Virus record (IMG/VR): IMGVR_UViG_3300042566_001780
Coordinates: 62,001 to 126,000 of that record
Direction: 5' to 3' (one strand)
DNA length: 64,000 nucleotides
Made by a program: the position numbers and the translations under genes. Positions 868 to 47,634 of the stretch are shown piece after piece (the stretch's first letter is position 1; each line of letters starts with the position of its first letter). The notes under the pieces were generated by a model. That model did no database searches. It saw nothing but the letters and a program-made list of their open reading frames with translations, and had not been told where the DNA came from.

Positions 868-2097
868 ATGACACGCCCGTTTGACTTATCTCTTAATCGA
901 GAAATTGAGGAATCTAGTCCTCTACATTGGAGAAAATTTTGGCCAAATCTCCAACGTATACATCCTACTAAAGTAGCATTACGCCAATCTATTATTTTGT
1001 GGGTAGCAAACCTGCATTATTCATGTCAAATGAATCCCCGCGGGTTCAACTATACTGAAATCCGTCTTACTGATTTGCGTCAGCAAGTCCGCGATTATCG
1101 AGTCATTATTGATTATTTCTTTGAAGTTGATCAACGCGGTTTTTGCATAGATGCTGATCATTATGAGGTGTCTCGCTTAATCCCTAAAGAAATTGGGTTT
1201 GAATTATCCCAAGAGATCAAGTTGGAAATCCCAAAGGCAGCATATATACCTCCTTCAAAACCAAAAGATGGTACTGTGTCAACAGTAAACATCTTCAATC
1301 GGGATAGTATAGAACAGCTTTTACTAGAAAATAAGCGCTATGATCTTTGGCCCCAAGTTAAGTGGCTGATAAATCAAGGCGATGCGGTAGAGTTTATTTT
1401 TCAGAAAAGTGGAAAACTTCAACAACGCGATACTAGCATTTGGCCTATTCAAGCAATTGAGACTTGGCCCTCTTGGCTGAGAGAAAAGTTATTTGGACCT
1501 GGGATTGACCTTGATTCTGCATATGTTCAGTTTATGATCAAGTCAGTGCAACCGTGCTATGATTCATTTCATAGTATGAAAACCGCTATACCAGATTTAG
1601 TTGATTTGATTTATGACAAAGAGCAATTTAGAAAATATCTGTGTCAAGATGTAATGAATTTGCCATACACAGAGAATAATATCAAGAGCATAAAACAGAT
1701 CATCATGGCTATTGCCAATGGATCTCGAATATCTGCAGATCTGACAAAATGCAGCAATTATTCTGAATCAGCAAAATTGCTTGTTGAATGTATGCGTGAT
1801 TCAAATGAAGAATATTTGGTCAAAGCTGCTAATAGGTTTCAACAAATTTCCCATCAATTTAGTACAGCTAAAAAGATGGCGTGTTTATATCTTACTAAAA
1901 GACATCCATCACGACTAAATCAAAAAGTAATTTTCAGAAACTATTTTGAGTGGGAAAGAACTGCGCGATATGCTATTTGGGAAGAATGTGGCCGACACGG
2001 TATCATGGTGCACGATGGGATTGACGGTATACCTGAATCGTACATTAAAAACATCGATTCGATAATGGATAAACTTCAACTTAAGTTGTCCACATGA
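868..2097 (+). CDS. divergent family A polymerase-like protein (palm motifs only)
   Basis: GIDLDSAY (motif A-like), IKQIIMAIANG (motif B-like), IMVHDGI (motif C-like); 409 aa. Confidence 0.45.
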   Translation: MTRPFDLSLNREIEESSPLHWRKFWPNLQRIHPTKVALRQSIILWVANLHYSCQMNPRGFNYTEIRLTDLRQQVRDYRVIIDYFFEVDQRGFCIDADHYEVSRLIPKEIGFELSQEIKLEIPKAAYIPPSKPKDGTVSTVNIFNRDSIEQLLLENKRYDLWPQVKWLINQGDAVEFIFQKSGKLQQRDTSIWPIQAIETWPSWLREKLFGPGIDLDSAYVQFMIKSVQPCYDSFHSMKTAIPDLVDLIYDKEQFRKYLCQDVMNLPYTENNIKSIKQIIMAIANGSRISADLTKCSNYSESAKLLVECMRDSNEEYLVKAANRFQQISHQFSTAKKMACLYLTKRHPSRLNQKVIFRNYFEWERTARYAIWEECGRHGIMVHDGIDGIPESYIKNIDSIMDKLQLKLST

Positions 2098-2102
2098 AAT
2101 TG

Positions 2103-2129
2103 AAAAAGGGTAGCATTGCTACCCTTTTT
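2103..2129. terminator. bidirectional intrinsic terminator
   Basis: AAAAAGGGTAGCA-T-TGCTACCCTTTTT between convergent genes. Confidence 0.8.
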
Positions 2130-2349
2130 AGCGTGAGAATGGATTTTTTGCTTCTTCTTTAAGTCGTTTGTTTAAGAATTCTACAGCTAAATCTCTTTCA
2201 ACAGCAGACATATTCAGCACTGTTTCGTAAGGTATAGCGCCTTTTGAAAAGTATGATATTTCAATTGCGGATTGTAGTAAAGATTTAGCTTCAAGCTGCA
2301 ATCGATCTATTGTTGCTATGATCCCGGTGCGATCGCCACTCGAAATCAT
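2128..2349 (-). CDS. baseplate hub assembly catalyst, T4 gp51-like
   Basis: 73 aa, YETVLNMSAVERDL motif, ATGA overlap with the gp26-like gene. Confidence 0.55.
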   Translation of the reverse strand: MISSGDRTGIIATIDRLQLEAKSLLQSAIEISYFSKGAIPYETVLNMSAVERDLAVEFLNKRLKEEAKNPFSR

Positions 2350-3143
2350 TCTGAGAAAAAACTGACAGGGTTCAATGGTAATTCAACCCTCATTTCTTCT
2401 CCACAGTCACGACACTTCAACTTTACAACTTGATCTGGGCCCCAGTCATTAAGCTGGGATGCTGCTTCGGTGATCTTATTGATTGACGGGGTGGTGAGTG
2501 TCTTGAGCCATTCTTCAATGAACTTTGGATCGGACGTGTCATCAACCTTTTCGATCATACTTAAAAGATTGCTCATAGCAATTTTCTTAATGTCATCTTG
2601 AGTTAATTCTTTTTTACCTTCAGATTGGTGGAATAACTTCACTACATCTGAAAAACGCATTGGACGCGTGACAACTTTAAACTGACCATCTACTATCACT
2701 ACCCGCTTTACCTCGATTAGGGTAGGATCCAGCTTTTTCATCGAAGCTGCCAAACTTTCTAAGTCAACCACATAAGAATGCTTTTTTGCATTCTCACAAT
2801 CATGCGTCACTTCAATGCGATACTCCGAACCATAAGTGGTTAGACGCAAGAAGAAAAGCAGCGCATCAATGTCTCTACCATATAGTTCGAGGGGCTTTTT
2901 AATTCCTGGAGCACATTCTGCCACTACTGCTTCTAATGCGGTACCATTAAATAACAGGTCCGGGTTCTTCAAGTTGATTTCTGTTAATGCTGTCATTGGG
3001 TGAATATGCATTTCACCTTCTTTGACAGAAATATCTAATTCACCATTGGAATAAAAAGCTCCTAATGATGGGAGTTGAAATACCCGACCTGGTAACTTTA
3101 CTTTGGATAATAGTGGATTGACTGTTTGCTGTGTGCTGCTCAT
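2346..3143 (-). CDS. baseplate hub subunit, T4 gp26-like
   Basis: LPSLG.FY, HPMT..E, DIDALLFFLRL.TYG and C-terminal CxxC...NPVSFF; next to the tape measure gene. Confidence 0.7.
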   Translation of the reverse strand: MSSTQQTVNPLLSKVKLPGRVFQLPSLGAFYSNGELDISVKEGEMHIHPMTALTEINLKNPDLLFNGTALEAVVAECAPGIKKPLELYGRDIDALLFFLRLTTYGSEYRIEVTHDCENAKKHSYVVDLESLAASMKKLDPTLIEVKRVVIVDGQFKVVTRPMRFSDVVKLFHQSEGKKELTQDDIKKIAMSNLLSMIEKVDDTSDPKFIEEWLKTLTTPSINKITEAASQLNDWGPDQVVKLKCRDCGEEMRVELPLNPVSFFSE

Positions 3144-3183
3144 AATTAAGTTTTAGTGAGAAAAATAGGAATGTTCACATTCT

Positions 3184-3191
3184 CTAAATAG
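3184..3191 (+). promoter_or_regulatory. late promoter CTAAATAG (tape measure)
   Basis: Variant of the T4 late TATAAATA element; recurs upstream of many structural genes. Confidence 0.65.
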
Positions 3192-3217
3192 ACAATGTTG
3201 CGATAGTTTTCTACTAT

Positions 3218-3225
3218 CTATTTAG
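3218..3225 (-). promoter_or_regulatory. late promoter CTAAATAG (baseplate hub genes)
   Basis: CTATTTAG on + strand, upstream of the minus-strand gene starting at 3143. Confidence 0.65.
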
Positions 3226-3260
3226 CTTCACCCGAAAGGGCTGAAACCTAGGATGATCTC

Positions 3261-6200
3261 ATGGATGCCGAAATTCTAAAAACCCTGCAGAACATTGAAA
3301 AGCTGTTAAAAAATACAACTTCGTTGTCTGCAAATAAAACTCTGCCTCCTGCACGTGGGAATGATAGGTCAGAACAAAAAGAAAACAGGTCTATTCAGCG
3401 CGAATTTAAGGCCTCTGCAGCTTCCCTTAAGGGTTTTAAAGATTCCATATATGGCTTGATAACGGGTGTCTCTGGGCTTAAATCTGAGGTATCCAAGGCT
3501 ACTTCTGCATTTGGTGCATTTGGTAGTCAGTTTGCGAAGTTTATGAGTTCTCTTGAATCTGTCGAAGTTAAGAGCGCTCAGCCAGTTACCTTGAATTTAA
3601 CAAGTCTAGATAAAGCAGTGCTCAAATTAATTGACACTAATTTGTCAATTGAAAAGACACTAGCCACTAGCACATCATTGTTGCAGAAAATGTCAGATTG
3701 CGTTTGTGAACGCGTTGATGCTAGACCTGAGCAAAATCAAGATGAATCTACTTGGTCTGCTATTTCCAATAAGGTTTTAGGTAAATTCTTCTCTAAAGAA
3801 ACCCAAAAGCCAGCGGAAAATACTGTCAAAGCTACTAAAGCAGTTAAAGAAGAAAATGAAAAGTTGGCTAAATCCACAAATGGATTTAATACTAATTTGA
3901 CCTTCACTGGTTCAATGCTGCATGGGCTTGGGCAACAATTTGACAAACTAAAGCAAGTTATTGTAACTGTCACTTCAGACTTCTTCAAAATAGCTGGTGT
4001 TGGCATGGGGTCTACAGAGTCGTTAATGACTTTGTATAAAAACGCTCTTCTTGCCGGTATGAGCCTTGAAGAGTATATGTCGATCCTTAAGGATAATACG
4101 GCAGTAACTCGAAGCTCGAGCTTAGCAGATTTCAATAAAACCATTTCATCTGCTGATAAGCAATTAGCGGAATTAGGCGTATTCGGTAATGAAGCCCGTG
4201 CATTACAGGCATCATTAGCTGATAGTAACACTCGAATGGGTGTTAGCCAAAATAAATTGACAAGTGCAGCAGCTGATCAAATCAGCATGTTTGAGAAGCT
4301 GCGTAAAGCTACCAACATGTCAGCAGCAGAATTTGGCACTTTAGTAAGATCAGTTGCAGAAAACGATCAAGCCCAGCGTGAACTTGTTGGCTTACATCCA
4401 GCTGAACGCCAAGCACGTCAACAGCAATTACTGAGTGTCATGTCTCTTGGCAAGCAAATGGGATTGACGACTGCTCAATCTGAGAAACTTGGTGCTGCAA
4501 TGATGGCAGCTAGAGGCGAGGGAGCATCGACCAGATATGAATCTGCCGGTCGATTGCGTCAAATGGGCGCAATAGTTGGTATGGGCGGAGAAGCTCAAAG
4601 ACTGGCTCAATTGACTCTTAAAGGTGCTTCACGATCCACTCAAGAAGAAGCAGAATATCAATCAGTCCTCGCATCATTAGATAAGCGTATCCAAAGTGAA
4701 AGATTAATGGCCCAGCAAACTGGAAATCTGGGTTATGAATATCAACTTGATGAACTAGAAAAAACAATTAAGGGGTCTGGCGCTGGTCAAATTATGGATG
4801 CTTCTCGAGCCGCTACTTTAGCACAAGAAAGTGGAAGGGCCGGGGCAAATGCAGATTTTGGTAAAAGTGTTGGTGTTTTTGAACAAGCTGTTGCACAATT
4901 TGCAACTATTATCAACGGGTTTTTTAAGAGTCCTTTAGCTGGGCTATCAGCAGCAATAGGCGGTGCTGTAGCGTTTGCATTTAAGGGCCCATTAATGCGA
5001 ATGTTGGGTGGTGCTTTTACTGGAGGACCTGGCGGTGGTGCAGTTAGTGGAGCAGCTAAAGTCGCGGCTGATGCAGCTACACAAGCTAAAAATCTATTTT
5101 ACAGTTTTGGCTATCAAGCCGGTCGGGTAACAGCCTTAATTTCTAATTCTGCAAGTAAAACTTTCTCTTTCTTAAAAGGCGGAGCCTTAAGCGCATTTGA
5201 CACAATTAGAAAAACCTATAATGCTCTATCACTATCATCTGCAATTACGAGCCCTCTTGAAGTAGTTAAGAATTTATTTGCTGGCGCAGGTAATTCAATA
5301 TTCAATTTTGTTTCAAAGCCATTTACTGCAATTAAGAATCTAATGAGTTCTATGCAGTTTGGAAATATTGCTTCTTTAATTAAAACACCTATTGAAACTA
5401 TCAAGGGATTATTTGGTAGTATCCCATCTAAATTATCTTCCATCATCCCGTCATTAAAGGGTATGGCAACCTCCATATCTGGATTTGCGCAAGCAATCCC
5501 AGGAATGTCAGCTATTGGGAATGCATTTAGTGGATTATTACCAGCAATCAAAAAGTTACCGCTTATTGGCGGATTAATTACTGCAGGAATGGAAATTTTT
5601 ACTGGTGAAATGACGGCAGCATTAAATCCAAGTGGCGGGATAATGAATACTATTTTTGGTGTAGCAACTGCATTTTTGACTGCTATACCAAATCTTATCA
5701 TAGATTCAATGGCATTTGTTTTTGGTGATGACTTAATACAACCATTAAGAAACATTTTTGACGGGGTAGTAGCTGGTATTAATCAAACATTTAAAGAGCT
5801 ACTTGGTGGAATAGCTGGTGGAATAGCTGGATTATTGAAATACATATTGCCAAAAGATTCTAAGTTAATTAAATTTTTAGAAGGCGCCCAGTCTGCGTTA
5901 AATGAATCTGCTGCAGAAACTGCAGCAACCACTAAAAAACTAGTATCAGACAAAAATGCTACTCTTTCAAAAATTTCAGAAGAGAACAAAGCTAAAGCTG
6001 CAGAAGCTAATAAAGAGGGAAAGAAAGCAGTTGATCAAGCTACTGCTACAGCAAAGCAATTTAACAATGTTATGTATGGATTGCCTGCGGCTAGCACTAT
6101 AGTTAGTGATGCAAAAACTCTTGTCGGTACGCAACAGCAAGCAGCAAAACCTATACAAGCTACTCCAGAGGTTCAAAAGCCAACGCAAGTAGCACCTGAG

Positions 6201-20444: not shown

Positions 20445-22013
20445 TTAGAGACGAACTAATTTGTGGTTGCCACAATCGAGCAACTTGATGAACTTGTTCC
20501 TACGCATGTTCTCATCTTCAGTGACATTTGGATCGAATGATTCTCCAAGCAATTCTGGAAGCTTGCTCTTCATCGATTCATAACGTGTCACGATCCCAAA
20601 TCTCGGATGGAACCAAGAATAGCCAGGTTGAGTTTGCTTGACGTGGTTGAATCCAGATGCCAAATAACCAGCACCATTTGAAAACCGAGCATCAGCATAA
20701 GTCAAAATTGGACCATCTACTAAGCTCATCAATTTGCTAACACCACCACGAACACTAACATTTTCTTTGAAGCACATCCTGAGCAGTTCAAGCCCTTCAA
20801 ATTTCTCGAACCTAGGTTTCCCAAAGGTGGCTACTCCAACTAATTCATTTTTGAAGAACAATCCCAACTTCAAACTAGATCGGCATGAACCTTGCAAATG
20901 GTAAGTTTCCAAAAAATCTGAACTAGTTTGAAGATCAATTTCTCTCACTTCACACTGTCTTGCATTCAACTTTCGTTCAGCTTTTCCCAACTTGGACCTA
21001 ATTATAGATTTGATAATGGATTGCTTTTCACTCCATTCATAATCCCAAATGTGAATGACTTGCACTCCTGCTTTTTCTGCCATTAATGATTTCTCAAGCA
21101 AGCCAATTTTGCCAGATTCATCATGATGCCAATAGACACCATTCATCTCTATTGCGATGTTTTTCTCGGGGATGACAATATCAAGTTCTTTTGGTGCTAT
21201 GATTTTTCGGTCATTTCTTAAACATTCAAAACCCAAAGAGCTAACAAAAGAAAATAGCTCTTTTTCAGGTTTAGATTGCCCGCAACATCCAGGGCATCTT
21301 AGCTTTTCAAATAATCCTAAATTGAACTCATGCCCACACTCATGCTTAACTTTAACAAAATCACTTGTTAAGTTGATAATGTCAAATTCTTGTTGAACTC
21401 GATTTATGAATTTTTGCAGTTGAATCTCATGTAATTTTGGCAACAAGATTGATGAGGACCAGGAGCAGGAGCTTTCTGCCCCGTACCGGCTCATCATAGT
21501 AGAACGCATTTTTGCATTTAGCTCAGCAGATTCGGTAGTGAAACCCCCAAACTTTTCTTGCATTGTAGAAGCAATTTGCTTTCTTATTGCTGCAACTTTT
21601 AGCGGGTGATCAACACCATAACGAGATAAGCATGTTTCTTTAGTCTTTGCTCTATGCAGTTCTGTCTTTGCAAAATTGTCTGCACCATACCGTGAAACCA
21701 TAGTAGAAGCTGATTTCTGCCTAACTTCCTCAACTGCCAATGTACTTCTCACCCCATAACGCTCTACACACGTAGATTCAATGGAGTTGAGTCTCTTCTC
21801 TTTCACCCTCTTCGAAGATGAAGCACACTCAGCAGAACAAAAATCCCGATAGCCTTTCATGAAGGAAAGAAAAGCCGTCTTCCTTCCACATTCACAAACT
21901 TTTTCTGAAATGCCGTTCAACGCAACATAAATGAGTTCAGAAACCGTGTCAAACTTTCCATGAACCTTCTCTAGTTCATTAATCAATTCTTTGTTTCTAG
22001 AAGCGGATGCCAT
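20445..22013 (-). mobile_element. Hef-like homing endonuclease (repeats, Vsr-like nuclease, GNAT-like domain)
   Basis: TCxxRYG repeats; ELDIVIP..AIEMNGVYWH; ELLRMCF..GGVSKL..TYADARF. Confidence 0.8.
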
Positions 22014-22095
22014 CTTAGCATTGAAGACTCATCTTTGAATGCTGCATCTATTATGTTCTGTCTGTTCATTTTGATTTTAGCCAGTATTGAAATTG

Positions 22096-22103
22096 TATTT
22101 ATA
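22096..22103 (-). promoter_or_regulatory. T4-type late promoter TATAAATA
   Basis: Exact consensus, upstream of the Hef-like endonuclease. Confidence 0.65.
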
Positions 22104-22108
22104 CCAGC

Positions 22109-22116
22109 TATAAATA
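22109..22116 (+). promoter_or_regulatory. T4-type late promoter TATAAATA
   Basis: Exact consensus 30 nt before the terL start. Confidence 0.75.
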
Positions 22117-22146
22117 GATTATCATATCACCATTTGAAATGTAAAG

Positions 22147-22512
22147 ATGGCTAAAAATCCAGGTTTAAAACGCGCTCATGAAACCGATGAGTATACCCAA
22201 GAAATGATTATGGAATTACAGAAGTGTTCTGTAGATCCAATTTATTTCATGGAGAAATATGTAAAAGTGCAACACCCCGTAAAGGGATCTGTGCCATTTG
22301 TTCTTTATGACTACCAAAAAGAAATGGTAATGGGGATACATGAGAATAGATCTACAATTTTGCTCCTGAGTCGCCAACTGGGAAAGTGTTTTTTTGGGTC
22401 CACAAAACTGCTAAATATTGTTAAGCCAACGGGCTTTAAAAAATATTTACTTAAGTTATTGGACAAGGAAACATATGACAACTTATTTCGCCCAAGCTCT
22501 ACAGAAGAATAA
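22147..22512 (+). CDS. terL: terminase large subunit part 1 (80 aa) plus split intein 1 N-fragment (41 aa, from 22387)
   Basis: DPIYF..LYDYQ..SRQLGK followed by intein block A CFFGST. Confidence 0.9.
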   Translation: MAKNPGLKRAHETDEYTQEMIMELQKCSVDPIYFMEKYVKVQHPVKGSVPFVLYDYQKEMVMGIHENRSTILLLSRQLGKCFFGSTKLLNIVKPTGFKKYLLKLLDKETYDNLFRPSSTEE

Positions 22513-23572
22513 AACCAAAACTCTTTTCACCAATTTGAATAAATGCCCAGTCTGCGAATCTACATTTTCAGATAATGAAGGTCATGGCAAATTTTGCTCT
22601 AAAGCGTGCTCTTCTAAAATAGAAAAGATGTGCATAATTTGCAATAAGAAAATTATTAGCAAAAAGCCTGACAAATTTTGCTCTAAGGCATGTCGTGATG
22701 TACCTGGCAAAATTAAACTAAACGAAAAGAGAAAAGCTGAAGGCGGAGTGCAATGTCTTATTTGCGGGGATTATGGTAAATCATTAGCATTACATCTTAA
22801 GAAACTCCATAACATTAGTGCTGAAGATTATCGAAATCAGTATGGTGGTAAAACAGTATGTGAATCTACTTCCACTAAGCTTTCTGAATTAACATCTGGA
22901 GAAAACAATCCATGGTATAACCACGGTGGTACTATTTCTCCATTCTCCAAGAACAACAAAAAGTTCATTGGTCTTTCTGAAGAAGAAAAACAGCAGAAGG
23001 TTAATGAAGCAGTTGATGCTTATATCAAAACTACCCCAAAAGAAAATCGTCCGATGAATGTTGAGTATTGGATCAAACGCGGTATGACTGAGGAAGAAGC
23101 AAAAGCACAAGTTTCTAAAAGACAAACTACTTTCAGCTTAGAGAAATGTATTGAGCGCTATGGTGAAGAAGCAGGTAAAGCTCGTTGGCAAGAACGGCAA
23201 GAAAAATGGCACAAAAATTATAAAAAGAGCAATTACAGCCAAGTCTCCCAAAGATTATTCTTTAACCTAGTTGAAGAATATCCTGATGCTATGTTTGCTG
23301 AGCACGGTTCTGAATTTGTCTTTAGGACCAAAACGGGATCAGTTTTCAAATTAGATTTTTGGGTACCATCTTCTAAACATTTGATTGAATTTGATGGTGA
23401 CTATTGGCATGGAAAACGAGATGCAATCGCAAACCCTAATAGGTCAGCTAATAGAGATAAACAAATTTTAGAAACAGATAGTGAAATAAAAATCTTACAC
23501 GTCAAAGAGCGCGATTTCTACAAGGATCCAGAAGGAACAATCCAAAAATGCAAAGACTTCTTAAAAACTTAA
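22475..23572 (+). mobile_element. free-standing Vsr-like homing endonuclease inside fractured terL
   Basis: Zn-finger repeats, KRQTTFSLEKCIERYG, LDFW..IEFDGDYWH; AAGGA RBS; CTAAATA at 22411. Confidence 0.8.
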
Positions 23573-24642
23573 AGCAGCGTCTTATTGATTGGTGCTTGCA
23601 GAAACAAGAAATTACCATCAAAGAACTTTTTCAATCATCAAATCCTTACCAAGTTTCCATTGATGATCTTACTGGAAATTTGAAATTTGTCCAAGAAGGC
23701 CATACTGAACGGTTAGTCCAAACTCCAACAGGCTGGGCACCTATCAAACGAGTTCTCCAAACTGTGCCATATCAAGCATGGCAATTGCGTGTTGATAGTT
23801 TAGAACCATTGATTGCAGCAGATGAGCATATCATTATGACTGAATCTGGCGAAAAATGGATGAAGGACTTATCACCCGGAGATTTAGTTCATACTATTAA
23901 TGGACTAAAGCCCGTTGAATCTATTCAAAATTTGGATAGATATGAAACTATGTATGACTTGGAATTAGATGACGATGGTCACGTCTTCTACACCAATGGT
24001 ATTTTGAGCCATAATACGACAGTAGCAGCCATGTATATTCTATGGTTTGCTACATTTCATGCGGCAAAAAGATGTGTCATTGCATCTAAAGCAATGAACC
24101 ATGCTGTGGAAATTATGTCTCGTATTAAATTTGCTTACGAGGAATTGCCGAGCTGGATTAAAAGTGGCTGTACCTTCTATAATAGAACTAGTATCGAATT
24201 TTCAAATAAATCTGTCATCGTTTCTGAGGCAACATCAGAGAAAACAGGTCGAGGTTCTTCGCCATCTATTATTTTCCTTGATGAGATTGCGTTTATTTCG
24301 CGCAGAATTCAAGAAGAAATGTGGAGTTCTTTAACTCCAGCATTAAGTACGGGCGGCAAATTTATTGTAACCTCTACACCTAATGGAGATTCTGATCTAT
24401 TTGCTACATTATGGCGTGGAGCAAATGCTGGTACAAATGGTTTTACGCCAATGCAGTTCTTATGGTGGCGCCATCCTGATCGAGATCAGGCTTATTATGA
24501 CGATATGGTTGGGAAACTCGGGCCGGTAAAATCCGCCCAAGAGTTAAACTGTGCCTCATATGACACTCTATTAGACACTTCTATAGGTAATTTAACTATT
24601 GAAGAGTTGTATACGCGGTTGTGCGGCAATCAGGGAGAGTAA
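23548..24642 (+). CDS. terL: intein 1 C-fragment (156 aa), terminase part 2 (178 aa), intein 2 N-fragment (30 aa)
   Basis: MYDLE..NGILSHN/TTV; Walker B IIFLDE; STPNG; AQELN/CASYDT. Confidence 0.9.
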   Translation: MQRLLKNLKQRLIDWCLQKQEITIKELFQSSNPYQVSIDDLTGNLKFVQEGHTERLVQTPTGWAPIKRVLQTVPYQAWQLRVDSLEPLIAADEHIIMTESGEKWMKDLSPGDLVHTINGLKPVESIQNLDRYETMYDLELDDDGHVFYTNGILSHNTTVAAMYILWFATFHAAKRCVIASKAMNHAVEIMSRIKFAYEELPSWIKSGCTFYNRTSIEFSNKSVIVSEATSEKTGRGSSPSIIFLDEIAFISRRIQEEMWSSLTPALSTGGKFIVTSTPNGDSDLFATLWRGANAGTNGFTPMQFLWWRHPDRDQAYYDDMVGKLGPVKSAQELNCASYDTLLDTSIGNLTIEELYTRLCGNQGE

Positions 24643-24644
24643 GT

Positions 24645-25751
24645 ATGGCATCAAATCAAACAATTGCACTCAATTATGAAGGCGTTAAAGTTCTTACCCC
24701 AACTGGTTATCAGTATTTTACTGGTATAAGCAGATCCTGGCATGAAGAAATTATTGAGATAAAGACGGCAAATAGAAGTATTAAAGCCGGAGTAAAGCAT
24801 AAATTCTTAACTTTAGATGGTTGGGTCCAATCTAGAGATTTAAAAGTTGGCGATGCTTTAGTCAATAATCAATGTGAAGATGAATGCATTACTGAAATAA
24901 ACATCTTAGCTGAACCTCAGTGGATGTATGACTTATTAGATGTTGAGTCCGGTAATACATATGTAGCTAATGGGCTTATTTGTCATAATTGCGAGTTTCT
25001 CTCAAGCGATGCGCTGCTAATTAGCTCGGTAAAGCTGCATCAAATCAAATATGAAAAGCCTATTTTTGAATCAATGGGATTTAAATTTTGGGTACCAGAA
25101 GAAGCGCTTGGTGGTAAAGGCAAAATATATCTAGTAGGTTTAGATCCAGCTACTGGGGGCGGGAATGATTTTTCTGTTATCGAAATATTTGATTTTCCTG
25201 GGTTAAATCAAATTGGAGAATTTCGCTCTAATGAAATCAACATTCCATTATTGTATGCTAAACTGTCGTGGATTTTAAAGAAGCTTACAGCCAATGTCAA
25301 TGGTGGCATTGCTGAAGTATCATGGACATTTGAGCGTAATGGCATTGGCGAAGCGATTGGTGCGTTATACTTTAATGATGAGAAACAAGTTGAAGAAGCA
25401 GATTTGTTTAATGATCATCATACAAAGTTTGGGGTGTATACAACTGGAAAAACGAAGATTTTGAATTGTTTGCAGTTGAAGACACTGGTTGAAAAGATCC
25501 ATAATGGTTTGAACATCAAGAGCGAACTGCTTATACATGAACTGAAGAACTTTGTGGCAAAGGGTGGTGGGTATGAGGCCAAGTCGGGTTCTACGGATGA
25601 CGCGGTGATGGCGACGATCTTGATCATGCGGTTGCTAAAGCGGCTTTCAGAGTATAATGAAGAAGCTTTTTCAACAGTCCATGAGTACGTTGACCCGAAT
25701 GCCGACATACCTGCAGAAGATTCTGATTCACCTCTGCCAATAATTCTATGA
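24645..25751 (+). CDS. terL: intein 2 C-fragment (115 aa) plus terminase nuclease domain (253 aa)
   Basis: GGGAG RBS; MYDLL..NGLICHN/CEFLSS; GLDPATG, FERN, DDAVMA. Confidence 0.9.
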   Translation: MASNQTIALNYEGVKVLTPTGYQYFTGISRSWHEEIIEIKTANRSIKAGVKHKFLTLDGWVQSRDLKVGDALVNNQCEDECITEINILAEPQWMYDLLDVESGNTYVANGLICHNCEFLSSDALLISSVKLHQIKYEKPIFESMGFKFWVPEEALGGKGKIYLVGLDPATGGGNDFSVIEIFDFPGLNQIGEFRSNEINIPLLYAKLSWILKKLTANVNGGIAEVSWTFERNGIGEAIGALYFNDEKQVEEADLFNDHHTKFGVYTTGKTKILNCLQLKTLVEKIHNGLNIKSELLIHELKNFVAKGGGYEAKSGSTDDAVMATILIMRLLKRLSEYNEEAFSTVHEYVDPNADIPAEDSDSPLPIIL

Positions 25752-26071
25752 GCACACTATCCATGTGGGAAATTCTTGTTCCCACTCTTCGTCGAGTCGA
25801 TGGGAAACCGTATCGCACTCGCTACCATCGCATATGGGATGAGAAAGTTCGGTCCATCACTGGTGGGTTGACGATCTTGACCCCAGCAAAAGGTCAGTGG
25901 GTAGCACCATGTGGACAACTCTATTCTGAGCGAATGATTCCAGTTCGGATCATGGCTACTCGTGAGCAGATTGAGCAAATTATTGATCACACGATCGTCT
26001 ACTATGATCAGCTTGCCGTTCTTTGTTATAGAATTAGCGATGAAGTTATTATGCGTTACGCAGAGGAATGA
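25748..26071 (+). CDS. hypothetical protein
   Basis: Coupled ORF; GGLTILTPAKGQW. Confidence 0.6.
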   Translation: MSTLSMWEILVPTLRRVDGKPYRTRYHRIWDEKVRSITGGLTILTPAKGQWVAPCGQLYSERMIPVRIMATREQIEQIIDHTIVYYDQLAVLCYRISDEVIMRYAEE

Positions 26072-39317: not shown

Positions 39318-39593
39318 ATGGGTTTACCATTTTTAGACAAGTTTAAAAAAGAAGTTGCTAAGCTTGAAACGGTTGGCGTCGGCATTAAAGAAACAGAAGT
39401 TTGGTTGAGTACTGGCAATTATGCATTGAATCGCGCATTGTCTGGTGATTTCAAAAAAGGCGTTCCGCTCAGTAAGATCACCCTGTTCGCGGGTCCCAGT
39501 GGGTGTTTGCCGGCTGATGAGAAGGTTGGAATTTATGTTTTTAAATCGCAGCCCTCAATAACAACGCCAATCTTTTTTGAAGAAAAAAAGTAA
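39318..39593 (+). CDS. uvsX: UvsX/RecA part 1 (62 aa) plus split intein N-fragment (29 aa, from 39504)
   Basis: STGNYALNRALSG..FAGPSG then CLPADEKV. Confidence 0.9.
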   Translation: MGLPFLDKFKKEVAKLETVGVGIKETEVWLSTGNYALNRALSGDFKKGVPLSKITLFAGPSGCLPADEKVGIYVFKSQPSITTPIFFEEKK

Positions 39594-39601
39594 AAAGTGT
39601 G

Positions 39602-39634
39602 ACGCTCCTATAAATAGCTTATTTATAGGAGCGT
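39602..39634 (+). promoter_or_regulatory. late promoter TATAAATA in a perfect 15-bp hairpin that covers the endonuclease RBS
   Basis: ACGCTCCTATAAATA-GCT-TATTTATAGGAGCGT; ATG at 39638. Confidence 0.8.
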
Positions 39635-39637
39635 ATT

Positions 39638-40879
39638 ATGACAGCAAAACTTTACGATTTATTTCTTCATGCTAACACTGGCAAAAAACCAGTTAAACCG
39701 AGACCATTAGTATCTTTTGAAACATTTAAAGACATAATTCTCTCAAATATCAGTAATATATTTGAAGATGATGCGTTTTTAAAAAATAAATATGATCAAT
39801 ACTGTGCTTTATATAACAGTACAGTGTTAACAAAAATTAGTGGTGTAGCAGCTATTTTAGGATTTGAATCAAAAAATACATGCTTAAATTATTGGCTTTC
39901 ACGTGGATGGCCCGCAGATATTGCATTAGAAAAACATCGAAATAGGCAAGCTACAGTTAAATTGGCAAATATAGCCAAATCGCACAATGTTTCAATGTCT
40001 GAAGCTAAAAGAATAAAAACTGAGAGACTTAATCGTGGAATAGAAACATTAAAAAATAAAAGCAATTACGATGAAATTTGCTATTCGCGTGGAAATAGTA
40101 TGCGAGTTTCATATTATGAAACTAAAATAAATCCCAAAACTGGAAATTTATATACGTCTAAAGAGGCAGCTGATTTAATTGCGCAAAAATCAGCAAAAAG
40201 AGCAACTAAATTTTGGGATGATGTACGCGCTGGGAGAAAAATTTATGATGCTTCGACATCGCTAAATTATTATCTGAAAAAGGGTATGACAGAAGATGAA
40301 GCGCGGGCAGCTTTAACCAAGAGGCAAACAACTTTTTCTAAGCAAATATGCATAGAAAAACATGGACATGATAAGGGATTAGAAATATTTAATAAAAGAC
40401 AGGAAAAATGGTTGGCTACTTTAAATTCTTTTTCTGATGAAGAGAAACAAAGAATTTTAATAGCAAAAACCAGTAAATCAAAATCATATTCTCAAGAAGC
40501 TACTAAATTTTTAATTAAACTTTTGGATAAACTTGGCATTTCTAGAAACTCAGAATATGTTAAAATGTGTGATAACGAAATGTTTTTATGGTCGCGAGAT
40601 AAAAAGATAGGTTTTTATGATTTAGCAATTGTAAATTTAAAAATAATTGTTGAATACCATGGATCATCATTTCATCCAAATCCAAATTTATCTGAGGATC
40701 AATTAAAATGCTGGATAAACCCAATTACTAAGGTGAGTGCATATGATCAAAGAAAAAGAGATTTTCAAAAACTGATAACTGCAAAAGAGCATGGATATAC
40801 AGTGTTTGAAGTTTGGGACGCAGACGATCATGATTCAAAAATTATTGAAATTTGTAACTTTATAAAGGAAAAACTATGA
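39638..40879 (+). mobile_element. free-standing Vsr-like homing endonuclease inside fractured uvsX
   Basis: KRQTTFSKQICIEKHG..RQEKW; YDL..IVEYHGSSFH..GYTVFEVW; locally very AT-rich. Confidence 0.8.
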
Positions 40880-42312
40880 GTACTTTTACCGCTGAAGTGA
40901 TGTTAGCAGAGTTGTTAGCTAATTTTTCATCGCAAGATTTGATCAAGAAAATTGGTATTTCTAAACCAACACTTAAAAAGCTTTATGATGGTGAAGCTAG
41001 CAATGAAGTGTTGTTTAAACTAGAACAGGCTTTTTTGGCACATGTAAGAGCAAACATTAAACAGATTTCGATGTCAAATTTAAAGTCGATTTTGGAATCT
41101 GGTAATACTGTAATGGTGGATACGCCTGATGGGCCTCAGGCGATTATTAAATTTTTTAATAAAGATGCTAGGTCTATTGTTAAACTCAGCACAGCAAATG
41201 GAAAAACACTAACATGTTCAAATGACCATTTAGTTGAAACTGATTTTGGGTGGGCGTATGCAAATAAAGATGTAGTTGGCAAAAATGTACTAACTGGTGA
41301 AGGCTTTAATCCTGTAATTAAAGTTGAAGACCTAGCACCTGAACCCGTTTTCGACTTTGAAGTAGCACATCCAAACCATCGTTATTGGGGCGGTGATGGT
41401 ATTTCTTCTCACAATTCTGGAAAATCCTTCATAGCTTCCAATCTTGCATTGCAGGCTCAAAAAGATGGATACCATGTTCTGTATCTTGACTCCGAGCATG
41501 CTATTGATGTTGATTATCTGAAGAAGATTGGTGTTGACGTTAGTGAAGATAGTCTTACATATCTCTCAGTCACTACCATTGAAGATGTCAACTCGGTGCT
41601 TTCCGAATTCTTTAGTGGGTATGTTAAGGCGTATGGTAAGGATTCTACGACTGCACCCAAAACCCTGATTGTTCTTGATAGTCTTGCTATGTTGAGTTCT
41701 GCTACTGAGATGGAGAACTATGACAAAGGCGGCATCATTAAAGCGGACCAAGGTATTCTCGCAAAACGTCGTAAAGCAATGCTTCGACTAGCTACTGGTC
41801 ATTTGGGTCGGTTGCCAGTCAACATGGTGATTACCGACCACGTGTACCCCGCTGATATTATGGCAGGTGACGGTGCATGGGCAATTACAAACTCCACTAA
41901 ATTCTCATCTTCAATTATTGGTATTGTCACAAAGCTCAAGCTAAAAGAAGAAGGTGAAATTACTGGTGTTCGCATGCGTTTTGAAACGTATAAGAGCCGA
42001 TTTGCAAAGCTTGGCACTAAGGTTGAGCTTGAAGTTCCTTATAACAAGGGAATGAGCCCTTTTAGTGGATTGCTTCCGCTTCTTGAAAGCATGGGAGTTA
42101 TTGCTAAAGGTACTAAGCCTGGTGAAAAGCTTCTTTGGGTATGCGAATGGACAGATGAAGATGGCGAAATTCATGAAGTCAAGTTCAAGGAAAAAGATTT
42201 GACTGATGACATTGTTCAGGAACTTCTTAAGCATCCTCTTTGCGCTGCAACAATGGCTCGCCCAGCTACTAAAGAAGATGAACCTTCTCTTGAAGATGAC
42301 GATGTAGAGTAA
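40876..42312 (+). CDS. uvsX: HTH-like segment plus split intein C-fragment (180 aa total), then UvsX part 2 (298 aa)
   Basis: TCSNDH, VFDFEV..SSHN/SGKS; YLDSE, IVLDSL. Confidence 0.9.
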   Translation: MSTFTAEVMLAELLANFSSQDLIKKIGISKPTLKKLYDGEASNEVLFKLEQAFLAHVRANIKQISMSNLKSILESGNTVMVDTPDGPQAIIKFFNKDARSIVKLSTANGKTLTCSNDHLVETDFGWAYANKDVVGKNVLTGEGFNPVIKVEDLAPEPVFDFEVAHPNHRYWGGDGISSHNSGKSFIASNLALQAQKDGYHVLYLDSEHAIDVDYLKKIGVDVSEDSLTYLSVTTIEDVNSVLSEFFSGYVKAYGKDSTTAPKTLIVLDSLAMLSSATEMENYDKGGIIKADQGILAKRRKAMLRLATGHLGRLPVNMVITDHVYPADIMAGDGAWAITNSTKFSSSIIGIVTKLKLKEEGEITGVRMRFETYKSRFAKLGTKVELEVPYNKGMSPFSGLLPLLESMGVIAKGTKPGEKLLWVCEWTDEDGEIHEVKFKEKDLTDDIVQELLKHPLCAATMARPATKEDEPSLEDDDVE

Positions 42313-44919: not shown

Positions 44920-47634
44920 ATGATCAAAACAATTATCAAGCGCAATGGATCTCGTGAACAATTTAATGCAGCAAAGCTAAATGGCTGGGGAGAATGGGCA
45001 GCACGCAAACTAGGCCATCTAGTTGATTGGCCTGCAGTAGTATTGCATGCAGTTAGCACTCTACCAGAAGATTGTACTAGTGAACAGCTGCAAAATGCGC
45101 TTATTGATTTTTGTTTGGCTAAGAAAACTTGGGAATACAACCTGATGGCTGGTCGGTTGTATGCTGCACTAATGTCTAAGCAAATTCATGGTCGTAAGAA
45201 GCCATCTATTAAAGATCTGCAAACTGCATTGTTCAATGATGGCTTGATGGCTCAGCTTAATTATTCTGATGAAGAATATGAGCAGATTGAGAAAATGATC
45301 AATCATAATCTTGATCTGAAAAGCTCACATTATGAATTGCAACAGATTCGTTACAAATATGCCCTTCGCAATAAAGTGACTGGTAAAGAATACGAAACTC
45401 CACAGTTCACGTATATGCGCATGGCTATGGCTCTTGCAGAAAATGAGCCAAAAGAAAATCGCATGACTGATGTTGCTAAATGGTACGAGCATCTTTCACA
45501 TAAGCGCATCAATGCTCCGACACCTTACTACACTAACCTTGGCACTACTCATAACGGTTATGCATCGTGCTGCGTGTATACAACGGGTGATACGGCTCCT
45601 TCTCTTGCCGCTGGCGATCATATTGCTTATATGATGACGGTGATGAGCGCCGGTATTGGTTCGCATATCAAAACCCGGTCACTTGGAGATCCAGTGCGTG
45701 GCGGCCTCATTAAGCACCAAGGTAAAATTCCATACTATCGCGCATTGGTCGGTGCTATTGGTGCAAACTTGCAAAATGGCCGGGGCGGCGCAGCTACTGT
45801 CCACTACACCGCGTATGATCCAGAAGTTGAAGTTATTGCAAAGCTCAAGAATGCAATGACACCAGCTGCTAAGCAAGTTCGTGGCTGCGACTACAGTTTT
45901 GGATCTAACAAGTTCTTCGCAAAAATGGCTGCGCAGGATAAAGAAATTGCCACCTTCTCTTATCACGATGCTCCTGAACTCTATGAAGCACAGTATGACG
46001 GCGATTCCACCAAATTCGAAAGACTTTATGAAGAATTTTTAGCTTCAGAAAAAAAGCGCACAGTTTTTTCTGCGCGCAAAATTCTTATAAGCGCTCTTGA
46101 AGAGGCGTATGAAACTGGCCGCCATTACCTGCACTTCACTGATACTATCAATAAGCATACACCTTTCAAGGAAAAGATTTATTCCTCGAACCTGTGTCTT
46201 GCGGGTAATACTTTAGTTAAAGCTAAGATTGATGGCTTTGAACGTGAAGTTACTCTTGAAGTTCTAGATGATGCATTCTGGGCTGGTGCTTCTATTGAAG
46301 TTATGTCGATGAATGATAGCACAAAGATTCGCGAGTACAAAAAAGTGGTGGCATCTAAACTGATGCGTCGCTCTGCAGAAGTTTTGTCTATCAAAGATGA
46401 ACTGTTTAGCAATGAGATTGTTTGCACTGGCGATCACAAAGTGTATACAGTTAATCGCGGCTATGTGGAAGCTAAAGATCTTCTGCCAAGTGATGCCCTT
46501 AATGTCAATGGCGAAATTAGCTTTGGCGTGATTAAAACCGAATTGCAAGATCGCATTGATGTCTATGACATTACTGTTGAAGACAACCACAATTTTTATG
46601 CAAACAATATTCTGGTGCATAACTGCCAAGAAATTGCTTTGGTGACCAAACCATTCAAGTCAGTGCAGCAGCTGTATGAAGATTACACCGAGGACTCTGG
46701 CGAAATCGCTCTTTGCAATATTGCCGCTATCGTAGTCTCAAACATTGAGAATGATGCTCAATATGATGAAGTTGCTTATTACACATTGAAGATGATTGAT
46801 GTAGGTATTCATAAGAGCACCTACGTCTTTAAGGCTCTTGAGCAAACTGCAAAAGCCCGCCTTAATGCTGGTGTTGGAATGATGGGTGTTGCTCATCTAA
46901 TGGCAAAAAATGGTAAGAAGTATTCTTCTCAAGAAGGTAAAAACTTTATGCATGAACTAGCAGAAACTCATGCATGGCATGTCATCAATGCTTCTCTGAA
47001 GCTTGCAAAAGAAAAAGGCAATGCTCCATGGATGCATAAGACCAAGTGGCCTGAAGGGTGGTTGCCAATTGACACGTATGAAAAGAAAGTCGATAGTTTA
47101 GTGACTGTTGAAAATAAGCGTGATTGGGAATCTCTTAGAAAAGAAATCATTGCCAATGGTGGCATTCGTAATTCTGTCTGTATAGCCTTCATGCCGGGTG
47201 AGTCGTCAAGTTTGTCGAGCGGAACCACTAATGGCCTATATCCAATCCGAGATTTTGACCTTGTTAAGACTAGCGATACTATGGCAGTCAATTACGTAGT
47301 ACCTGATGCCACGAAGCTCCGCGATAAATATGAAATAGCCTGGGATGTTCCTACCACTGATCTAATTCATCATTATGCAATTGTCCAAAAATGGACAGAT
47401 CAAGCAATTAGCGCTGATCTTTATCGCAAGATTCAAGGTGATGATACGGTTGGCACTACTGAAATGATGGAAATTTATTTCAATCTGGTACGCTATGGAA
47501 TTAAGACCCGCTATTACCAAAATAGCTTGACTGCAAAGGGTATTGATCTTAATTCATCTGAAACAAATGATGATGCCCAAGTTATAATTAACGACTCTGA
47601 TGATGAAGCTAATTGTGAAGGCTGTTCTCTATGA
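44920..47634 (+). CDS. nrdA: class Ia ribonucleotide reductase alpha subunit with cis mini-intein
   Basis: ATP cone IIKRNG, ASCC, SSNL/C.EI, MPGESSS, C-terminal CEGC. Confidence 0.95.
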   Translation: MIKTIIKRNGSREQFNAAKLNGWGEWAARKLGHLVDWPAVVLHAVSTLPEDCTSEQLQNALIDFCLAKKTWEYNLMAGRLYAALMSKQIHGRKKPSIKDLQTALFNDGLMAQLNYSDEEYEQIEKMINHNLDLKSSHYELQQIRYKYALRNKVTGKEYETPQFTYMRMAMALAENEPKENRMTDVAKWYEHLSHKRINAPTPYYTNLGTTHNGYASCCVYTTGDTAPSLAAGDHIAYMMTVMSAGIGSHIKTRSLGDPVRGGLIKHQGKIPYYRALVGAIGANLQNGRGGAATVHYTAYDPEVEVIAKLKNAMTPAAKQVRGCDYSFGSNKFFAKMAAQDKEIATFSYHDAPELYEAQYDGDSTKFERLYEEFLASEKKRTVFSARKILISALEEAYETGRHYLHFTDTINKHTPFKEKIYSSNLCLAGNTLVKAKIDGFEREVTLEVLDDAFWAGASIEVMSMNDSTKIREYKKVVASKLMRRSAEVLSIKDELFSNEIVCTGDHKVYTVNRGYVEAKDLLPSDALNVNGEISFGVIKTELQDRIDVYDITVEDNHNFYANNILVHNCQEIALVTKPFKSVQQLYEDYTEDSGEIALCNIAAIVVSNIENDAQYDEVAYYTLKMIDVGIHKSTYVFKALEQTAKARLNAGVGMMGVAHLMAKNGKKYSSQEGKNFMHELAETHAWHVINASLKLAKEKGNAPWMHKTKWPEGWLPIDTYEKKVDSLVTVENKRDWESLRKEIIANGGIRNSVCIAFMPGESSSLSSGTTNGLYPIRDFDLVKTSDTMAVNYVVPDATKLRDKYEIAWDVPTTDLIHHYAIVQKWTDQAISADLYRKIQGDDTVGTTEMMEIYFNLVRYGIKTRYYQNSLTAKGIDLNSSETNDDAQVIINDSDDEANCEGCSL
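46195..46623 (+). mobile_element. 143-aa contiguous mini-intein in nrdA
   Basis: CLAGNT..CTGDH..VYDITV..ILVHN/C. Confidence 0.92.

Follow-up and report, generated by a model that had tools for sequence, protein, structure and literature searches.

Terminases and P-loops are frequent intein targets (PMC4760082), and a number of systems have been described in which an intein is divided between separate genes. In the fractured genes reported by Dassa et al. in 2009, an N-extein fused to an N-terminal intein half (IntN) is followed by a free-standing endonuclease gene and then by a C-terminal intein half (IntC) fused to the C-extein; the host genes include a phage terminase, and a Vsr-like family is among the endonucleases concerned (PMC2677866). 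Atypical split inteins of the AceL/GOS-TerL family combine short N-halves (25, 37 and 30 amino acids, aa) with C-halves of 104–115 aa (PMC11766414), and the IntN of PolB16 OarG is 15 aa long (PMC10189870). Trans-splicing in tandem, with two orthogonal split inteins and three segments, has been engineered (PMC12707363, PMC7210297). Here we describe a gene for the large terminase subunit (TerL), located at positions 22147–25751 (+ strand) of a 64-kb window (the whole stretch analyzed; 64,000 nt) from the IMG/VR record IMGVR_UViG_3300042566_001780, a jumbo phage contig of 291,687 bp. The sequence suggests that this TerL is made as three chains, which two class 1 split inteins would rejoin into one 511-residue enzyme, and we give this interpretation a probability of about 85%. 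Each component is of a known kind, and the natural tandem combination appears to be undescribed in the searchable literature. A search for a natural gene needing two split inteins returned only engineered tandems and intron-split terL genes, although subscription literature was thinly covered and the absence is therefore weak evidence.

Piece 1 of the gene (22147–22512, 121 aa) consists of TerL residues 1–80 (22147–22386), the last of which is the Walker A lysine (SRQLGK), and a 41-aa IntN1 that starts with CFFGST and ends at a stop codon (22387–22512). Piece 2 (23548–24642, 364 aa) begins with a 156-aa IntC1 (23548–24015), ending in SHN before Thr+1, continues through the middle extein (TerL 81–258, from TTV to AQELN, 24016–24549), which holds the rest of the ATPase domain, and terminates in a 30-aa IntN2 with a stop codon (24550–24642, starting CASYDT). 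Piece 3 runs from an ATG at 24645 to a stop at 25751 and comprises a 115-aa IntC2 (24645–24989), ending in CHN before Cys+1 (CEFLSS), and the C-extein with the nuclease/translocation domain (TerL 259–511 plus stop, 24990–25751). Re-reading of open reading frames (ORFs) together with the sequence returned the coordinates, lengths and motifs given in a first-pass annotation of the window, along with its sum of 80 + 178 + 253 = 511 aa. That annotation described a layout of three genes; its pieces are right, but it overlooked a gene between pieces 1 and 2, so that the interval holds four + strand ORFs rather than three. The additional ORF (ATG at 22475, end at 23572, 365 aa) encodes a putative free-standing homing endonuclease in the third frame; it shares its first 38 nt with the end of piece 1 and its last 25 nt with the start of piece 2. 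In both inteins the two halves are encoded by different ORFs, which have their own stops and starts, and every half is joined to an extein, an arrangement that is conserved in relatives L011, L018, L020, L064, L065 and L066. The locus had no DNA-level match among GenBank phages, hence no annotated near relative is present there, and a promoter and terminator scan gave nothing above shuffled expectation.

The gene encodes a large terminase of the T4 gp17 type, in which a Walker A motif (SRQLGKT) and the ATPase domain are accompanied by an RNase H-like nuclease domain at the C terminus. The extein blocks match T4 gp17 at E-values of 1e-8 to 1e-21 and occur in gp17 order (residues 91–166, ending LSRQLGK; 167–326, starting TTV; and 360–550). 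In addition, the N-extein matches phrog_5989 (terminase large subunit, E 3e-23), the C-extein matches phrog_36964, and an AlphaFold2 (AF2) model of piece 2 superimposes on the gp17 ATPase with a root mean square deviation of 2.1 Å (Foldseek). Aligned with gp17, intein 1 falls between the Walker A Lys and Thr (K166/T167) and intein 2 at the boundary between ATPase and nuclease (~353/354). Seven or more intein-free IMG/VR relatives (66–81% identity) have the three blocks contiguous in one frame, as in L010 (4761–5000, 5001–5534 and 5535–6290). Hence, the junctions SRQLGK/TTV and QELN/CEF, as first proposed, are exact to the residue.

Several lines of evidence identify the sequences at the first junction as intein halves. 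IntC1 scores 22.8 bits against the NCBIfam intein C-terminal model TIGR01443 (cut-off 15.6), and IntC2 likewise exceeds this cut-off, which upholds the intein identity read earlier from motifs. A phmmer search matched IntC1 to the gp41-1 intein (E 2.5e-6) and to VidaL (E 0.015), and VidaL (6vgv) was also its top intein match in Foldseek. The AF2 model of piece 2 (predicted local distance difference test score of 86) contains a HINT fold matching the structures of the VidaL, gp41-1, RecA and DnaB inteins. In IntC1, a head helix (..LIDWCL) precedes the alpha1 helix (ITIKEL); block B reads ADEH and block G reads ..SHN. Across 18 middle-piece sequences, H94, H155 and N156 are invariant, and the His of block B, the acidic residues of block F, the penultimate His, the terminal Asn and Thr or Ser at +1 are all invariant or nearly so. 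IntN1, in turn, has a Cys1 beta-hairpin core of ~20 aa, the remainder being a conserved helical tail (LLKLLD..TYD..F). It is conserved in 13 other piece-1 proteins of 114–127 aa (L011, L064 and L065 have the same arrangement), with Cys at position 1 in 13 of the 14 and the tail motif F-K/R-K-x-LLK-LLD-x-x-T-Y/H-D-x-x-F retained. The head helix of IntC1 is also conserved, with an invariant Trp, and the tail and head motifs co-occur in the sequences examined. These two helices, which the first-pass annotation overlooked, may pair and so help IntN1 find IntC1.

Contiguous relatives and models indicate that intein 1 is broken past strand beta2 and ahead of the ITIKEL helix. In the minimal contiguous relative, P0044, the hairpin (..SGQIKN) leads directly into the helix (MSIEDVF), and in P0007 and P0015 inserts of intermediate size separate the two. 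The contiguous P0013 has both the IntN1-tail and the IntC1-head motif, with 16 residues between them, and in its AF2 model beta2 is followed by a pair of short helices, a loop and a single long helix before alpha1 is reached. Taken as a series, these sequences and the model indicate that the intein 1 break and the endonuclease gene lie in the loop of a helical insert that precedes alpha1. We also considered an alignment in which IntN1 itself contains alpha1 (KPTG-FKKYLLKLL set against the hairpin and helix of the Vibrio phage VP-1 intein), which would have placed both intein breaks at an equivalent position; P0044, P0007, P0013 and the AF2 models weigh against it. Among more distant double-split middle pieces (P0272, P0312, P0286 and P0251; 328–355 aa), the site-1 C-intein starts ~16–20 residues before the 'W.I.T..GW' strand. 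These C-inteins suggest that the Walker A intein is split elsewhere in other lineages, after alpha1 and the next hairpin.

Intein 2 belongs to the AceL/GOS-TerL (Cat) family of atypical split inteins. IntN2 comprises the Cys1 hairpin and an alpha1 helix (LTIEELY), modeled by AF2 as strand, strand and helix. Homologous tails share this end point in 17 other clusters as well as in L004 and L018, and position 1 is Cys or Ser in 18 sequences. The best PDB match of IntC2 was the 'Consensus engineered intein CatC' (6dsl_B, E 1.3e-8), with residues 6–114 aligned to 9–111; as the alignment extends from the first residues, the break point is the same as in AceL/GOS-TerL. Similarly, in P0219, which carries a contiguous relative of intein 2, a short loop joins the alpha1 helix to the next strand, placing the break just after alpha1, as in AceL-TerL. 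Splits before and after the TIxEL helix, respectively, had been proposed for the two inteins from the sequence, and the contiguous relatives (P0044, P0007 and P0013 for intein 1, P0219 for intein 2) bear this out. Piece 3 also passes the Pfam Intein_splicing cut-off (39.1 versus 35.8), and across 46 piece-3 proteins the IntC2 residues H52, D96, H114 and N115, along with Cys+1, are invariant or nearly so. Blocks B (..VKH) and G (..CHN) can be placed, the HINT assignment of IntC2 being made by sequence only. The gp17 matches of the exteins, the TIGR01443 scores of both C-halves and the Pfam score of piece 3 greatly exceed what chance would give. The +1 nucleophiles named earlier, Thr for intein 1 and Cys for intein 2, are correct in that SHN/T and CHN/C are invariant in the alignments. 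The two inteins are ~26% identical to each other and are of unrelated lineages.

Pieces 2 and 3 lie so close together that an assembly or sequencing indel had to be considered. The piece 2 stop and the piece 3 ATG are 2 nt apart, and the piece 3 frame, which differs from that of piece 2, is open back to 24603; one indel could therefore fuse the two into a single frame, in which case intein 2 would be a contiguous mini-intein and the terminase would come in at most two pieces. This worry, raised in the first-pass annotation, is refuted by the relatives. L066, an ENA sequence from an independent sample and a different assembler, has the three-piece layout (piece 2 94% identical) and preserves the stop, 2 nt and ATG despite an inserted codon (3 nt) and several substitutions nearby. 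The junction takes other forms in two further relatives with the full layout, L064 (NCBI GCA_013332875.1, ~45% identity), in which a 47-nt spacer is present, and L065 (a 277-kb JGI contig), in which the pieces overlap by ATGGTTGA. In L018 and L020, the intein 2 halves are separated by a whole endonuclease gene (Vsr-like and HNH, respectively). Moreover, middle pieces in 20 clusters end 25–40 aa after Cys1, with tails of varying length, and a GGGAGAG ribosome-binding motif stands ahead of the ATG at 24645. Read from the sequence, this motif (24633–24639), the TAA (24640–24642), 2 nt and the ATG form a restart signal at 24633–24647, with the same geometry in L066, and piece 3 most plausibly starts at this ATG rather than at the first in-frame GTG (24621).

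The layout recurs well beyond these examples. At least 20 clusters of the form IntC1–middle–IntN2 were identified (43–94% identity), and an exhaustive search yielded ~15 further double-split middle pieces of 328–398 aa (50%-identity representatives), such that the layout is kept from 94% to ~35% identity. A census of 216 retrieved protein clusters comprised 86 intein-free, 45 IntC2–C, 32 IntC1–middle–C, 20 IntC1–middle–IntN2, 12 N–IntN1 and 9 N–middle–IntN2 clusters, and 5 with a contiguous intein 1 and IntN2. The splits also occur singly. For example, L011 has split 1 with its endonuclease gene and is without intein 2; L004, like nine clusters of ~289 aa, has only split 2; it is without intein 1, and its IntN2-like tail ends in a stop. 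The three-piece layout is common across a whole phage clade, which the first-pass annotation had not recognized, and is not an assembly artefact.

A further explanation is that the pieces are joined by RNA or at the ribosome, either through a group I intron in which the endonuclease gene resides or through programmed frameshifting or hopping. There is precedent in the terL of Jug jumbo phages, which is split in two or three by group I introns (PMC12880540), and Vsr-like endonucleases also reside in group I introns (PMC2677866). However, Rfam gave no match in the window that reached the gathering threshold, nor any within 22000–25900 at E ≤1, and the breaks are flanked by recognizable HINT halves that have stops and starts of their own. 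A slippery site is absent at 24603–24640, and the junction geometry varies among relatives. Joining at the RNA level or during translation is accordingly very improbable here.

The inteins and the middle extein are under purifying selection. Relative to L066, the ratio of nonsynonymous to synonymous substitution rates (dN/dS, Nei-Gojobori method) is 0.10 for IntC1, 0.12 for IntN2, 0.05 for IntC2 and 0.06 for the middle extein; for the endonuclease ORF it is 0.21. From the low values of the inteins and extein (0.05–0.12), together with the invariant catalytic residues, we infer that both inteins are active in trans-splicing. IntN1 would dock on IntC1, and IntN2 on IntC2, to rebuild two HINT domains. 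Splicing would then take the class 1 path, in which an acyl shift at Cys1 is followed by transesterification to the +1 residue (Thr in intein 1, Cys in intein 2), cyclization of the terminal Asn, and an acyl shift that leaves a peptide bond. The products would be four excised intein fragments and a 511-residue gp17-type TerL in which the Walker A motif (SRQLGK-TT) and the junction of ATPase and nuclease (QELN-CEF) are both restored. Prior to splicing of intein 1 the P-loop would not be intact, and prior to splicing of intein 2 the ATPase and nuclease domains would be unlinked. Intein 1 would still hold a selfish endonuclease gene at its break, whereas that of intein 2 would have been lost here and kept in relatives.

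Some observations weigh against active splicing. The case for it is drawn from sequence rather than from the protein level. Piece 2 falls under the cut-off of the Pfam Intein_splicing model (22.4 versus 35.8), and neither IntN1 nor IntN2 alone matched any PDB entry. In both inteins, moreover, the block B Thr is replaced (ADEH in intein 1, GVKH in intein 2), which is their sole departure from the intein canon; the block B His is invariant in both, and among relatives, active members of the family included, the residue at the Thr position is variable (T/G/S). Such replacements would fit halves that no longer splice and only dock, with the terminase working as a non-covalent complex of three chains. 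A precedent exists in Aeh1 NrdA, a phage enzyme that a mobile element has fractured and whose fragments are reportedly held together non-covalently by element-derived domains (PMC3045599). Docking would not, however, demand that Cys1/Ser1, the His residues of block B and the penultimate position, the terminal Asn and the +1 nucleophile all be invariant (18 and 46 sequences), and ~200 intein residues would stay inside the P-loop, between the Walker A Lys and Thr. We therefore view a docking-only terminase as unlikely and favor trans-splicing.

Lastly, the gene could be a decaying terL that selfish elements have inactivated, with another terminase responsible for packaging. The neighborhood is rich in homing endonucleases and inteins, and some relatives have an extra upstream ORF resembling the TerL ATPase. 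This explanation is nonetheless very unlikely given the dN/dS of 0.05–0.12 over exteins and inteins and the retention of the layout down to ~35% identity. In addition, no second TerL-like sequence was found within the window, the search spanning 64 kb of the 292-kb contig.

If both inteins do splice, they would have to act without interfering with each other. The middle chain has an IntC-X-IntN topology, in which a cross-reaction between the inteins would circularize the chain; their low similarity (~26%) and differing break points should prevent this. A more specific possibility is that the inteins are a natural orthogonal tandem pair, kept incompatible by selection through breaks before and after alpha1, in which an amphipathic helix 'zipper' (LLKLLD..TYD..F in IntN1 and ..LIDWCL in IntC1, within the loop that lodges the endonuclease gene) recruits the short IntN1 hairpin. 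We offer this only tentatively and consider it rather doubtful as a whole.

The ORF between the intein 1 halves is putatively a free-standing Vsr-like homing endonuclease gene, as suggested by weak matches. The N-terminal part of its product is a Ros/MucR-like zinc finger (Pfam ROS_MUCR, above cut-off), and the C-terminal part, putatively a Vsr-like (EDxHD-type) nuclease, has a weak match to MTES_1575 (E 6e-4, below cut-off). A profile built from three homologues gave weak matches to Vsr (1odg, 1vsr and 1cw0) and the intron endonuclease I-Bth0305I (3r3p) at E 0.03–0.05, while the single sequence matched only a Ros zinc finger in PDB. The homologues share an EF.GDYWH motif, with E305, D309, H312, D335 and E345 invariant in all three, and the window protein has a ~9-residue deletion in its nuclease core. 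A homologous gene occupies the same position between the intein 1 halves of L011. In L064, the ORF at this position (3006–3980) has repeated zinc-finger/Ros-like motifs, is without a recognizable nuclease domain, and looks like a decayed endonuclease; in L065, the gene is gone entirely, and none is present at either junction. Synonymous divergence (dS) between the window and L066, which come from nearly identical phages, is very uneven (IntC1 0.19, middle extein 0.54, IntC2 0.83, endonuclease 1.04, IntN2 1.29), and the endonuclease proteins are 71% identical compared to 94% for piece 2, suggesting recombination or gene-conversion tracts near the mobile elements.

Published precedents confirm the earlier statement that atypically split TerL inteins and fractured genes are already known, and comparison with them shows where this locus departs. 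Junction 1 has the same-strand, three-ORF layout of the fractured genes of Dassa et al., with a Vsr-like endonuclease gene between the IntN and IntC ORFs. Junction 2 has this layout in L018 and L020, whereas in the window only 2 nt separate its ORFs. The loci of Dassa et al. are fractured in two by one split intein and have a spacer of 27–51 nt; terL here is fractured twice, and its endonuclease gene overlaps both halves, near the intein N terminus, at an atypical site. AceL/GOS-TerL/'Cat' inteins (PDB 6dsl) resemble intein 2 in residing in TerL and in their short N-half, long C-half and Cys+1. The sequence similarity is only moderate, and intein 2 is here the second of two split inteins in one protein. 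VidaL (6vgv) and PolB16 OarG resemble intein 1 in having an ultra-short catalytic IntN (a hairpin of ~20 aa). VidaL is the best structural intein match of IntC1, a likeness judged from IntC1. Unlike either, intein 1 has Cys1 and Thr+1, resides in the TerL Walker A motif, and carries ~21 conserved, predicted-helical residues on each side of its break.

Other phage terminases have related inteins in simpler arrangements. Among cultured phages, Aeromonas phage PX29 (gp17A/gp17B) has an annotated N-intein in 17A and, in 17B, a GIY-YIG endonuclease with a C-intein, at the intein 2 site, and Vibrio phage VP-1 (Ackermannviridae) has a contiguous Walker A intein as well as one that is broken at site 2. 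Such genes are split once, into two pieces, with the endonuclease fused to an intein half rather than free-standing, and their TerL proteins are <45% identical to that of the window. Further Ackermannviridae (e.g., Serratia phage Kevin and Salmonella phage bering, ~735 aa) carry a contiguous mini-intein at the same Walker A insertion point, which shows homology to IntC1 along most of its length, is unsplit, is without an endonuclease gene, and in which no helical insert was recognized. The engineered tandems use the same IntC-middle-IntN logic but are man-made from inteins of different genes, in contrast to the single natural gene considered here.

Among relatives, terL has additional features. 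A third intein site, at Walker B (..LY/C ... N/CDE), occurs in P0075, P0082, P0111 and P0044, and in L013–L016 and L056. P0075 and P0082 combine splits at sites 1 and 2 with a contiguous intein at Walker B, which makes three inteins in one terminase. In L019, an 840-aa ORF (906–3428) reads uninterrupted from TerL across the site-2 intein, and a 202-aa HNH endonuclease ORF (1765–2373) is nested within it in another frame, leaving ~200 alternative-frame codons open, which is not expected by chance. Directly upstream of terL in L005–L007, L009, L018 (874–1482), L019 and many others is an ORF of ~200 aa that resembles the TerL N-terminal ATPase, being 27–50% identical to extein blocks 1 and 2; the window has no such ORF.

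Mobile elements also occupy other genes of the window. A UvsX/RecA-like recombinase (39318–42312, +) is likewise a fractured gene. In its N piece (39318–39593, 91 aa), ..FAGPSG is followed by an N-intein of 29 aa that begins with Cys. The endonuclease ORF (39638–40879, 413 aa) is homologous to the one in terL, and the C piece (40876–42312) begins with a C-intein of ~180 aa, ending in ..SHN before SGKS (Walker A), and continues with the RecA domain. The arrangement seems to be a further atypical split, similar to VidaL-UvsX. A class I ribonucleotide reductase large subunit (44920–47634, +, 904 aa) contains a contiguous mini-intein (..SSNL/CLAGN ... ILVHN/CQE) that scores above the Pfam Intein_splicing cut-off. 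Immediately upstream of terL, on the opposite strand, is a free-standing homing-endonuclease-like gene (20445–22013, 522 aa) whose product matches phrog_3339 and has DUF7487, Vsr-like and Mom-like parts.

For protein engineering, short N-halves are valued since they can be made synthetically, and this locus together with its ~20 or more relatives would supply ready-made intein pairs that coexisted in one cell and one chain. With regard to the phages themselves, the relatives show the stages side by side: an empty site, a contiguous intein, a split with an endonuclease gene, a split with a degenerate endonuclease, and a split without one. Their coexistence helps explain the atypical break points by insertion of an endonuclease gene near the intein N terminus. 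An essential, single-copy phage enzyme would tolerate two independent fractures, an arrangement that persists across a deep clade.

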